From the NCBI GenBank assembly GCA_037447605.1, contig CM074820.1, positions 558,001 to 622,000 on the forward strand: a stretch of DNA of 64,000 nucleotides, read 5' to 3'. This document shows positions 32,425 through 37,109 of the stretch, piece by piece (positions within the stretch are counted from its first letter, which is position 1; every line of letters begins with the position of its first letter). The notes under the pieces are model-generated. The model was not told where the DNA came from, did no database searches, and saw only the letters and a program-made list of their open reading frames with translations. Source of the stretch: Zygnema circumcarinatum SAG 698-1b (lineage: Eukaryota > Plantae > Zygnematophyceae). A program made the translations under genes and the position numbers.

Positions 32425-35400
32425 CTAAGCCGAGGTTTTGAATACCACGCATCGGCGGCTGTCCGGGTAGAGACTGTTGCCGTCCCCAGGGTTCAGGTTC
32501 AGCACGCTCCCTCCCAATAGCGGAATTTGAACGGAGTGGAGAGGGAGGAGAACGCATTTGCCTTCAAAGGAGGAGAGGCCGGGAGAGGGTTGAAATTGGC
32601 GCGCTTTGACGACGGCTAACTGAGCACCTTCCGCATAGAACTGCGTTCCCGCCGTTTCGAGCGTAGAAGGGCACTGCATGAAGAGGCCGGGAGTGGACTG
32701 GTCGACTTCGATGATCTCCACGATGCCGCCATGGACGGTCAGGATGAAAGGGCTGATGGCTTGATCGGCGGAGACGTTAGAGAGGGAGAATGTGGGAATG
32801 GAGTCGTTGAAGCCTTCAAAATAGAAGTCGCAAAGTTGGTGGGGGGAGGTGGGGCAAGATGTGGGACAAGGGGGAGGGGGAGAGGGAGGGGAGGGAGGAG
32901 GGGGAGATGGAGGAGGAGGGGAGGGAGGGGGGAGTGGAGGGGAAGGAGGCGGGGGAGACGGAGGGGAGGGAGGAGGGGAAGGTGGAGGTGGAGAGGGTGG
33001 GGGAGGGGTTGGGAAGGGAGGTGGGGGGGAAGGAGGGGAGGGAGGAGGTGGAGACGGAGGTGGGGGTGAGGGGGAGGGAGGAGGGGGGGAAGGAGGGGAT
33101 GGCGGAGGGAAGGGAGGAGGCGAGGAAGGAGGGGAAGGGGGAGGGAAGGGAGGCGGTGGGGAGGGCGGTGGAGGTGAGGGGGAGGGAGGAGGAGAGGAAG
33201 GAGGGGAGANNNNNNNNNNGGGGAGGGGGGAGGTGAGGGAGGCGGTGGGGAGGGAGGTGGAGGTGAGGGAGATGGAGGAGGGGAGGAAGGAGGGGATGGG
33301 GGAGGGAAGGGAGGGGGTGGCGAGGGAGGGGGAAGTGATGGAGAGGCAGGTGGGTGGGAATGATGAAAGGGAGGTGGAGGGGAGAGAGGGGGTGGTGAAA
33401 TGGACGGAGGAGGGGAGGGAGGAGGGGAGGGGGGAGGAGATGGAGGGGGTGGGGAGGGAGGAGGAGGGGAGGGAGAGTCAGGTGGGTGAGAAGGAGGAAA
33501 GGGAGGAGGGGGGGAAGGAGGGGAGGGGGGAGGTGAGGGTGGTGGAGGGGAGGGTGGAGGAGGGTAGGGAGATGGATGTGGAGGGGAAGGAGGTGGCGGA
33601 GGTGGTGAATGTGGTGGAGGTGGAGATAGAGTGGGAGGGGAGGGAGGAGGAGGGGGAAAAGGTGGAGGAGGTGAGGGAGGGGGCGGTGGAGGGAGGGAGA
33701 AGGAGGGGGGGGTGAGGGAGGTTGAGGAGGAGGGGGTGAGGGACGCAGAGGCGGGGTTGAAACAGGTGGGGTGGGGGGAGGAGGAGAATGCGCAGGAGAC
33801 GGAAGCGGAGGGGCGGGTGGTGTAGGCGGTGGTGGGGATGGAGGAGGAGGTGGTGAGGGAGGGGGAGGCGAGGGATTTGGAGGTGGTGGAGAGGGTGAAG
33901 GAGGAGGAGGAGGGGAGGGGGGGAGTGGAGGGGAAGGAGGCGGGGGAGACGGAGGGGAGGGAGGAGGGGAAGGTGGAGGTGGAGAGGGTGGGGGAGGGGT
34001 TGGGAAGGGAGGTGGGGGGGAAGGAGGGGAGGGAGGAGGTGGAGACGGAGGTGGGGGTGAGGGGGAGGGAGGAGGGGGGGAAGGAGGGGATGGCGGAGGG
34101 AAGGGAGGAGGCGAGGAAGGAGGGGAAGGGGGAGGGAAGGGAGGCGGTGGGGAGGGCGGTGGAGGTGAGGAGGGAGGTGGAGGTGAGGGGGAGAGGAGGA
34201 GGGGAGGAAGGAGGGGAGGGGGGAGGTGAGGGAGGCGGTGGGGAGGGAGGTGGAGGTGAGGGGGAAGGAGGAGGGGGGGAAGGTGGGGAGGGGGGAGGTG
34301 AGGGAGGCGGTGGAGAGGGAGGTGGAGGTGAGGGGGAGAGAGGAGGGGAGGAAGGAGGGGAGAGGGGAGGTGAGGGAGGCGGTGGGGAGGGAGGTGGAGG
34401 TGAGGGAGATGGAGGAGGGAGGAAGGAGGGAGGGAGGTGAGGGAGGCGGTGGAGAGGAGGTGGAGGTGAGGGAGATGGAGGAGGGAGGAAGGAGGGATGG
34501 GGGAGGGAAGGGAGGCGGTGGGGAGGGAGGTGGAGGTGAGGGGGAAGGAGGAGGGGGGGAAGGAGGAGGGAAGGAGGAGGAGGGAGGAGGGGGGGGAAGG
34601 AGGGGAGGAGGGGAGGAGGAGGGGAGGGGGAGGAGATGGAGGGGGTGGGGAGGGAGGAGGAGGGGAGGGAGAGTCAGGTGGGTGAGAAGGAGGAAAGGGA
34701 GGAGGGGGGGAAGGAGGGGAGGGGGGAGGTGAGGGTGGTGGAGGGGAGGGTGGAGGAGGGTAGGGAGATGGATGTGGAGGGGAAGGAGGTGGCGGAGGTG
34801 GTGAATGTGGTGGAGGTGGAGATAGAGTGGGAGGGGAGGGAGGAGGAGGGGGAAAAGGTGGAGGAGGTGAGGGAGGGGGCGGTGGAGGGGAGGGAGAAGG
34901 AGGGGGGGGTGAGGGAGGTTGAGGAGGAGGGGGTGAGGGACGCAGAGGCGGGGTTGAAACAGGTGGGGTGGGGGGAGGAGGAGAATGCGCAGGAGACGGA
35001 AGCGGAGGGGCGGGTGGTGTAGGCGGTGGTGGGGATGGAGGAGGAGGTGGTGAGGGAGGGGGAGGCGAGGGATTTGGAGGTGGTGGAGAGGGTGAAGGAG
35101 GAGGAGGAGAGGGAGGCGGAGGTGACGGAATTGGAGGAGGCGGAGAGGGTGATGGAGGTGGAGGGGGAGGTGAAGGAAGTGGTGGGGAGGGAGGCGGAGG
35201 TGACGGAGAGGGAGGAGGGGGAGAGGGTGATGGAGGTGGAGGGGGAGGTGAAGGAGGTGGTGGGGAGGGAGGCGGAGGTGACAGAGAGGGAGGAGGGGGA
35301 GAGGGCGATGGAGGTGGAGGGGGAGGTGAAGGAGGTGGTGGGGAGGGAGGCGGAGGTGAGGGAGAAGGAGGAGGGGGAGAGGGTAGAGTAGGACGAGCAG

Positions 35401-37109
35401 TCGGTAGAACTGCTCCGCAGAGAGTCCCATTGGCTCCTGTGGGACCCGTCTGGAAAACGATGCAGCGCCGATTTTGGGGATATTCGGAGTTGTTGTCGCC
35501 AGGGTTCAGGTTTAGGACGGTGTTGCCTTCAGGGATCTGTACGGATGAGAGAGGGAGAAGGACGCACTGGTTCTCGAAGTAGTCGCGGGAAGGCTGTGAA
35601 AGAGAGTGGGAGGAAAATACAGGGTGTGAGAAAAGTAATGAAGAAAATGCGCAGGAATAGTTAGCTGGATGGTTCAGGCAAACTTGGGTTGGTTTCAAGA
35701 TGTTTCAGAGAAATTTGTGCGTTATTATATGGTTGCTGGAGATAAAATCACCATTTTTTCAATCAGTTCAGTTTGTGCGGCATTGCAGAGTTTTATTTGA
35801 GAGAGAGAGAGAGAGGGGGAGAGAGAGAGAGAGAGAGTGAGAGAGAGATGGGGGGAGGGAGAGACACAGAGAGAGCGAGAGAGAGAGAGAGAGAGAGAGA
35901 GAGAGAGAGAGAGAGAGAGAGAGAGAGAGAGAGAGAGAGAGAGAGAGAGAGAGAGAGAGAGAGAGAGAGAGAGAGAGAGAGAGAGAGAGAGAGAGAGAGA
36001 GAGAGAGAGAGAGAGAGAGAGAGAGAGAGAGAGAGAGAGAGAGAGAGAGAGAGAGAGAGAGAGAGAGAGAGAGAGAGAGAGAGAGAGAGAGAGAGAGAGA
36101 GAGAGAGAGAGAGAGAGAGAGAGAGAGAGAGAGAGAGAGAGAGAGAGAGAGAGAGAGAGAGAGAGAGAGAGAGAGAGATAGAGAGAGGCAGCGAGGGAGA
36201 GGGGGAGAGAGACAGAGTGTGGTGGTACCTGGTTGAAGGTGCGGAGCTGCAGGTGCGCCTGCTGCCCCACAAGATAGAACTGATTCCCCGCACTCGTGGT
36301 TCCTGCTCGCGGGCACACGAACTGTCCGTTGGCCGTCGAGTCGACTTCGATGACTTGTCGCGAGACGGAGTCCATGACCGCCGGACTGAGGGGGGTGTCC
36401 GGAGTCACGTCGAGGCTGCACAGGAGGGGAGGGAGCAAAATACTTCTATCATGTTTGTACAACAACACATAGCACATGAGTAGCACATGAATAGAAGGTG
36501 AAATCGTATTCGTAGAACAAGGCAATATATTGAACAAAATTTGAAATCAAACATGAAATGTGGAGTCAGAAGAATATCTTTCATCGAATTCAGGAATTAG
36601 TCAAGAATTAACGCAAATTGCGGCGTTTTCGAACAACTGTAAATGGTCATGATTCAATTTGAGTGACGGAAAATTCGTAGTGAGGTTAGTCTTGTAGTTG
36701 CAATGCATGAAGACGAGAGTAAAGGTTTCAGCCAGCGAGGCATGCATGCATTCAAATACGTCGCAAGGGAAAGATCTCCGGTTCGAGTCCGGTCATAGGC
36801 TAAGTTAAACTTTGCTTTGCAAAAAATAGCACTTAAATCAAGCAATGCAATATCGAAAAAGGTAAACAATTCAAATGAAGTTTTTTCGTACCCGAATATG
36901 GGGACCGTGTCCTTCCACCCCTGAAAATAGAAGTCGCAAAATTCCGTGGGACTCGTCGGGCACGTCTTCATCACTTTCTGCGCGCTCTCGAGCCGTCGCC
37001 GCGGAGTGAAGGCCTCCGAATGCCATGGAAACCGTATTGCAGTTACGCCCTCAGTTAGCAATACCCCAACTATAACAGCCACATGGATAAGGAAAATTTT
37101 CCGCCCCAT
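32425..37109 (-). CDS. Secreted chimeric extensin-like/HRGP: globular domain, long Ser-Pro(n) rod, second copy of the globular domain
   Basis: Exon 1 37109-36892 (signal peptide MGRKIFLIHVAVIVGVLLTEGVTA), exon 2 36415-36229, exon 3 from 35593 to the stop at 32425, with consistent splice phases. SPPPP-rich linker ~32880-35390 has apparent frameshifts and an N gap. The two domain copies share CPTSP..CDFYF.G, IEVD, F.CP, AG.QFY, CVLLPL.SVQIP, VLNLNPGD.NS.YP..RRC.VF.T. Confidence 0.85.
35877..36178. repeat. Perfect (GA)n microsatellite, ~300 bp, in intron 2 of the HRGP gene
   Basis: Uninterrupted GA run. Confidence 0.97.

Follow-up and report, generated by a model that had tools for sequence, protein, structure and literature searches.

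Do two cysteine-containing domains that flank a long tract of Ser-Pro codons in the streptophyte alga Zygnema circumcarinatum SAG 698-1b belong to one secreted protein, and what kind of protein would this be? The question is raised by positions 32425-37118, on the minus strand, of a 64,000-nt stretch of contig CM074820.1 (assembly GCA_037447605.1, positions 558,001 to 622,000 of the forward strand), which is referred to below as the window. An original prediction made from the DNA letters had read at this locus a signal peptide, a first copy of a domain called X, a very long Ser-Pro3-5 rod and a second copy of X, and had proposed a bivalent cross-linker or lectin of the wall or mucilage, possibly of an undescribed class of hydroxyproline-rich glycoproteins (HRGPs). 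Following our analysis, we consider it reasonably probable that the locus is one gene for a secreted, extensin-like HRGP consisting of a signal peptide, X1, the Ser-Pro rod and X2, and acting as a bivalent matrix binder. What would be new here is a chimeric-HRGP or dumbbell protein built from an undescribed module of streptophyte algae.

The N-terminal head, X1, is interrupted by introns and was analyzed exon by exon (Table 1). The start codon is an ATG at 37118, with a second Met codon at 37109, and a hydropathy profile places a hydrophobic core at residues 7-20, following a short basic start, that resembles a signal peptide and fits the one originally claimed. About 25 residues after this core comes the first conserved block of X, C-P-T-S-P...C-D-F-Y-F. 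All four X1 splice sites are GT/AG. Intron 1 splits a Gly codon, and the joined exons 1 and 2 read P-I-F-G-L, which corresponds to the conserved P47-x-F49-x-L51 of the family. Because the junction restores this conserved P-x-F-x-L motif, the splice model for X1 is well supported. The three exons jointly cover the hidden Markov model (HMM) of the family, and X1 is a complete copy of X. Exon 3 completes X1 at 35447 and passes directly into the rod. Intron 2 also contains a (CT)150 microsatellite (36177-35878).

The C-terminal head, X2, is placed with its end two residues before a TAG stop codon at 32427-32425. It is fused in frame to at least 112 upstream Ser-Pro codons, and X1 is likewise in frame with 256 of them. 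When X2 was compared with the window by tblastn, the three X1 exons were matched in order (E 1e-16, 2e-8 and 7e-4), with the exon 3 part of X1 reaching 66% identity to X2 over 50 residues (E 1e-16). Two copies of X are thus recovered by tblastn and by the family HMM, as had been predicted, and neither method revealed a further copy inside the window. A weak tblastn match of X2 at 23386-23270 was dropped, being without support from the family HMM. The five Cys residues said to align between the copies do so, at family columns 27, 35, 86, 128 and 163, and the other signature residues of the family described below are all present in X2 and also readable in the X1 exons. The two heads differ in intron count, with two in X1 and none in X2, and the middle exon of X1 (36229-36415) resembles the N-terminal X domain of fusions with GDSL esterases or thioredoxin (48-54% identity) more closely than it resembles X2. 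For these two reasons, X1 and X2 are best viewed as old paralogues rather than as the products of a recent internal duplication.

Table 1. Coordinates of the features of the X1-rod-X2 locus (positions are those of the window; HMM, match to the family model).
Feature	Positions	Strand	Description
Exon 1	36892..37118	-	Start, signal-peptide-like segment and N-terminal X1 (C-P..P...C-D-F-Y-F); phase 2 end; HMM 22-49, E 2e-12
Intron 1	36416..36891	-	476 nt, GT..AG; donor GT 36891-36890, acceptor AG 36417-36416
Exon 2	36229..36415	-	Middle of X1: EVD strand, central Cys, QFY, conserved Arg; HMM 54-116, E 1e-15
Intron 2	35594..36228	-	635 nt; donor GT at 36228, acceptor AG 35595-35594
Exon 3, start	35447..35593	-	C-terminal third of X1 (C-V-L-L, N-L-N-P-G-D, R-R-C-I-V-F-Q-T); HMM 121-169, E 4e-23
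Spacer and rod	32872..35446	-	Short Cys-containing spacer, then Ser-Pro3-5 rod, ~830 codons in six Ser-Pro-frame segments
Ser-Pro segment 1	35398-34631	-	Frame 2
Ser-Pro segment 2	34620-34510	-	Frame 0
Ser-Pro segment 3	34499-34200	-	Frame 1
Ser-Pro segment 4	34198-33694	-	Frame 2
Ser-Pro segment 5	33692-33220	-	Frame 1
Ser-Pro segment 6	33207-32872	-	Frame 0, running into X2
Rod block A	34604..35109	-	Recurs at 33912-33406 apart from three single-C indels
Rod block A'	33406..33912	-	Second copy of block A; ~1.2 kb tandem duplication
72-bp array	34170..34604	-	Six ~72-bp (24-codon) units; spacings 70, 66, 72, 72 and 73 nt
Assembly gap	33210..33219		10 N; flanks are the same 72-bp repeat family, nearly in register
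Domain X2	32428..32871	-	Intronless; HMM 23-169, E 3e-58

What kind of domain is X? A phmmer search with X returned 92 clusters at E<=1e-3 and 41 at E<=1e-10, with a best E-value of 2e-34. The named sources are Mesotaenium endlicherianum (five gene models), Netrium digitus, several Closterium strains, Coleochaete scutata and Klebsormidium nitens; apart from one entry, every named source is a streptophyte alga, and most of the proteins are unnamed or hypothetical. That one entry (P0058) is assigned in a EukProt transcriptome to the vampyrellid amoeba Leptophrys vorax, which feeds on such algae, and it probably stems from contamination by this prey. The ~30 X relatives looked up included neither a land-plant nor a chlorophyte protein, the other ~60 carrying no names, and X is likely absent from land plants. 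The signature derived from 65 full-length domains consists of Cys27, Cys35-Asp-Phe-x-Phe, Pro47, Gln-Phe-Tyr at 98-100, Arg112, Cys128, Asn-Leu-Asn-x-Gly-Asp-x-Asn at 147-154, Pro158, Arg-Arg-Cys at 161-163 and Phe166. Cys35 and Cys163 are invariant (65/65 domains, 100%). The signature residues are shared by relatives (E-values down to 2e-34) that include Mesotaenium ME000083S10042, Closterium CLOP_g6991 and Klebsormidium KFL_000010540. Closterium sex pheromones (PR-IP Inducer) were considered as possible kin; no named pheromone occurred among the relatives looked up, and the idea was dropped.

Pfam scans covered ~65 family sequences, ~45 of them at E<=10 and the rest at stricter limits, with the proviso that HMMER filters may hide matches above ~0.1. 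A characterized Pfam family containing X, a result that could have spoken against the original prediction, was looked for and none was found. At E<=10 there were zero matches for X2 and for each X1 exon, and the 37 aligned members gave scattered single matches at chance level that pointed to no family. Seven divergent relatives (E<=10) and 20 further ones (E<=0.01 or 0.001) likewise placed X in no Pfam family. Nor did X match any carbohydrate-binding module (CBM) family in Pfam, a single CBM96 trace in P0060 (E 0.17) being at chance level. A word search with X2 alone came back empty, and with the family profile it yielded four matches, all unnamed. The ESM Atlas held no usable match to X2 and, for the relative P0055, structure rows only (template modelling (TM) score <=0.40), and scans of IMG/VR and GTDB produced no X relatives. 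X thus belongs to no Pfam family, in agreement with the original prediction, but it is not peculiar to the gene in the window: it is a widespread module of streptophyte algae.

The fold of X2 was predicted with AlphaFold. Without an alignment the result was unusable (predicted local distance difference test, pLDDT, of 32), whereas with the 37-sequence alignment it reached a pLDDT of 94.9 and a pTM of 0.89 and was all-beta, with about twelve strands. The conserved N-P-G-D-G-N stretch forms a loop ahead of the last strand of the predicted fold, and the two invariant Cys residues lie on its first and last strands. The model suggests a Cys35-Cys163 disulfide and adjacent chain ends, as would suit a plug-in module. 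A Foldseek search of the PDB gave no match at E<=0.001 (best 0.05, TM<=0.43), the BFVD search none, and both VIA modes generic sandwiches only; a sequence search of the PDB with the family profile found nothing at E<=10, and cadherin and Ig-like domains showed no clear structural or sequence match to X. As modelled, X is a generic Greek-key beta-sandwich without an identifiable solved relative.

Do the two heads sit on one chain? The sequence between them encodes ~830 residues in Ser-Pro frames, of which 69% are Pro and 20.6% Ser, with 95 SP3+ motifs, 2 Tyr, 0 Lys and 0 Cys. The long Ser-Pro3-5 rod of the original prediction is thus present in extent, but not as a continuous frame: the stretch contains frame switches and an assembly gap. 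The coding strand of the rod is 66% C, and because all three of its frames are nearly stop-free, open frames are uninformative here. Several observations weigh against a single chain. As assembled, the Ser-Pro frame runs in the order 2 > 0 > 1 > 2 > 1 up to the N gap and is 0 beyond it, and five switches are counted. The uninterrupted open reading frame (ORF) from X1 is 960 residues long and ends at 32816 without X2. Two of the five switches (~34505 and ~34210) are located inside the 72-bp array, which has no duplicate from which the correct unit length could be read. Finally, the flanks of the 10-N gap, the real length of which is unknown, are in different Ser-Pro frames (1 versus 0); because of this difference, continuity across 33210-33219 is not demonstrable. 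Introns were ruled out as the cause of the switches, as the coding strand of the rod contains zero AG and so offers no acceptor, and a second start within the rod was ruled out by the equal absence of ATG.

The frame switches could be real, in which case the gene would be decaying or truncated, its product would be X1 and rod with a Leu/His/Pro-rich tail to 32816, and X2 would be left untranslated. The five switches in the assembly and the failure of the sole uninterrupted X1 ORF to reach X2 are what this explanation would predict; this ORF drifts into out-of-frame Leu/His-rich sequence, and slippage in C runs is also a natural mutation. However, X2 keeps all signature residues, matches the family HMM at E 3e-58 and has a confidently predicted fold, which is unexpected in untranslated DNA. 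In addition, the two 505-bp copies of a rod block differ by zero substitutions and by three single-C indels, all located in runs of C (34890/33693, 34630/33434 and 34616/33419), and every one of these indels falls where one block copy switches Ser-Pro frame and the other does not. Because the copies show C-run indels without substitutions, the pattern of consensus errors, the frame switches can be read as homopolymer errors of the assembly, although slippage mutation may also be the source of the indels. A decaying or truncated gene is, on balance, improbable.

A second alternative is that the gap either conceals where an X1-rod gene stops and a rod-X2 gene begins, or joins unrelated contigs. 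This would account for a gap of unknown size with flanks in different Ser-Pro frames. The flanks nevertheless consist of the same 72-bp repeat, almost in register, and farther along the right flank lies a block that shares 98.9% identity with 34170-33903; the gap most likely hides repeat units only. A separate rod-X2 gene would also have neither a start nor a signal peptide, since the coding strand of the rod is free of ATG on either side of the gap, and the arrangement of X, Pro linker and X is known from other organisms. We regard two genes or a mis-join as very unlikely. One chain is favored because X1 and X2 each run in frame with Ser-Pro codons, the rod contains neither ATG nor AG, the C indels coincide with frame switches, and the gap flanks share one 72-bp array. 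Its status as one chain depends on reading the five switches as homopolymer errors, and on the gap.

Three other 10-N gaps in the window (24564-24573, 28951-28960 and 60088-60097) also lie within CT-rich low-complexity tracts, and the assembler seems to break systematically in CT-rich sequence. On the minus strand at 21422-23227 there is a further CT-rich tract of ~1.8 kb. Its three frames encode SPPPP-like, LLLP-like and related strings, so that it may represent another HRGP rod in which the frame is equally ambiguous; the family HMM found no X domain adjoining it.

Where else does X occur? Architectures were collected from a local scan with the family HMM and from Pfam on the relatives. Many small proteins (~165-205 residues) carry X alone behind a signal peptide. 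Two copies occur in tandem in P0001 and on either side of a Pro-rich linker of 40-80 residues in P0002/P0094, P0023 and P0062. An N-terminal X is followed by a Pro linker and a GDSL esterase in P0010, P0020 and P0029, while TAXi-type aspartic proteases are followed by an SPPPP linker and a C-terminal X in P0026, P0063, P0069, P0078 and P0081. P0022 (1379 residues) has two X domains, an HRGP region and then a protease, P0003 and P0047 join X with thioredoxin, and P0055 (Klebsormidium nitens GAQ77605.1) has X followed by SYSPP repeats. Going by these architectures, X is a mobile extracellular module of streptophyte algae, and Pro-rich spacers almost always separate it from the rest of the protein. 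The layout of globule, rod and globule claimed for the window gene is the most economical reading of its DNA and recurs, with shorter linkers, in P0001, P0002/P0094, P0023 and P0062. Inter-head linkers in the other two-X algal proteins measure from 0 to ~80 residues, compared with which the rod of ~830 in the window is by far the longest seen. One relative, P0089 (718 residues), has its X split into an N-part (31-108) and a C-part (569-673) by ~460 residues that include a match to DDE_Tnp_4, and probably reflects a transposon inside an X gene or its intron.

A two-headed protein with a Pro-rich rod brings to mind the pherophorins of volvocine algae. These are described as secreted dumbbells with two homologous heads of ~150-170 residues and a Pro-rich, hydroxylated rod of variable length, which serve as building blocks of the extracellular matrix and form glycan-linked cross-links (PMC9818292). 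X could be a very divergent pherophorin domain, and the gene a true streptophyte pherophorin of a family older than the split between chlorophytes and streptophytes. In favor of this idea are the shared layout of two homologous heads of ~150 residues around a variable Pro-rich rod (PMC9818292), and the UniRef label of P0055, 'Pherophorin domain-containing protein'. The label is not reproduced by Pfam: a 2025 scan of P0055 at E<=10 gives a sub-threshold Extensin_1 match only, and its precomputed Pfam field is empty. The Pfam family of pherophorins from Volvox and Chlamydomonas, PF12499, is matched at E<=10 by none of the X1 exons, X2, P0055 or the 37 aligned members, nor by any of 20 relatives at stricter limits, and no chlorophyte protein is found among the X matches looked up. 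The lineage is streptophyte rather than Volvocales, and X, unlike the pherophorin domain in this comparison, also occurs by itself and in fusions with esterases, proteases and thioredoxin. The Cys residues of pherophorin domains are more numerous than those of X and differently arranged. We found no paper connecting pherophorins with streptophyte algae. On sequence grounds X is no pherophorin domain, and a hidden common origin appears distinctly improbable.

Other wall-protein systems share some features with the protein proposed here. Chimeric extensins, which comprise LRX, PERK and the long chimeric types found in algae, likewise combine a signal peptide, SPn repeats and a globular domain, and a review notes that green algae are without classical extensins but do possess long chimeric ones whose role is unknown (PMC10762512). 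The globular domain in the window differs in that it is not a leucine-rich repeat, kinase, formin or any other Pfam family. Land-plant cross-linking extensins share SPn repeats with the rod, whereas the rod is without their Tyr cross-link motifs (YXY, VYK). Solanaceous lectins also unite binding modules with a Ser-Hyp rod, but X has no hevein or chitin-binding match in Pfam and is a predicted all-beta sandwich of ~145 residues as opposed to a Cys knot of 43. The original view that X is neither a pherophorin domain nor a solanaceous lectin thus agrees with the absence of PF12499 and hevein-type matches. A further parallel is offered by secreted carbohydrate-active enzymes in which a CBM is joined through a linker to a catalytic domain: X is likewise a small beta-sandwich found at either end of an enzyme, behind a Pro/Ser/Thr linker, and also doubled or alone, although it matches no CBM family and its partners here are GDSL esterases and aspartic proteases.

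How might such a protein work? After secretion, hydroxylation and glycosylation, the Ser-Pro3-5 repeats of ~830 or more residues would form a stiff, glycosylated polyproline-II rod of the Ser-Hyp, arabinosylation type. Polyproline II extends by ~3 A per residue, and we estimate the rod at ~250 nm. X itself would bind a wall or mucilage component, either a glycan or another matrix protein, and with one head at each end of the rod, the protein would link two such sites, acting as a bivalent tether or as a cross-linker. Matrix binding is the likely job of X because X sits at either end of enzymes via linkers, and also alone or doubled; a CBM-like role also fits because the invariant Cys residues sit at the first and last strands. 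That no CBM or lectin family matches X counts against a bivalent binder of this kind. Lectin or cross-linker activity of the X-rod-X protein is suggested by its architecture.

Instead of binding glycans, the heads might associate with one another or with further matrix proteins, perhaps involving Ca2+, and the protein would then polymerize into a network rather than act as a lectin. The conserved N-L-N-x-G-D-x-N loop, rich in acidic and amide residues, would suit such contacts, and purified pherophorins self-assemble into insoluble networks; the fusions to esterases and proteases, together with the CBM49 and chitin-synthesis neighbors described next, fit targeting to a substrate or the matrix equally well or better. 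Protein-binding heads of this kind are rated as rather unlikely.

The neighbors in question come from metagenome contigs of 28-29% GC with compact, intronless genes, on which genes for a signal peptide followed by X lie at L001:3987-4547 (+), L002:5899-6432 (+) and L003:1094-1645 (+). L001 and L002 share the gene order GFAT, X and a CBM49 protein although their X proteins are only 63% identical, and L001 continues with a Chitin_synth_2 (chitin-synthase-like) gene and polysaccharide deacetylases. The GFAT of L001 and L002 is of the eukaryote type and resembles human GFAT1 more than E. coli GlmS; the contigs may come from a eukaryote with a compact, AT-rich genome or from a giant virus. These neighbors link X to extracellular polysaccharide synthesis by association only.

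Returning to the window gene as a two-headed matrix binder, what would it mean for streptophyte algae? In a tentative proposal, about which we have considerable doubt, they would have independently built a pherophorin-like, two-headed cross-linker, and X would serve as a general wall or mucilage tag for secreted esterases and proteases, forming a new binding-module family that was not carried into land plants. Should X instead prove to be a deeply diverged pherophorin domain, matrix proteins of the pherophorin type would be as old as the ancestor shared by all green plants. The wall proteins of the nearest algal relatives of land plants are poorly characterized. If X binds a wall polymer, it would provide a handle on the organization of their wall and mucilage as well as a probe for the polymer, and the gene would show, beside the pherophorins of Volvox, that dumbbell HRGPs arose by convergence or are of very ancient origin.

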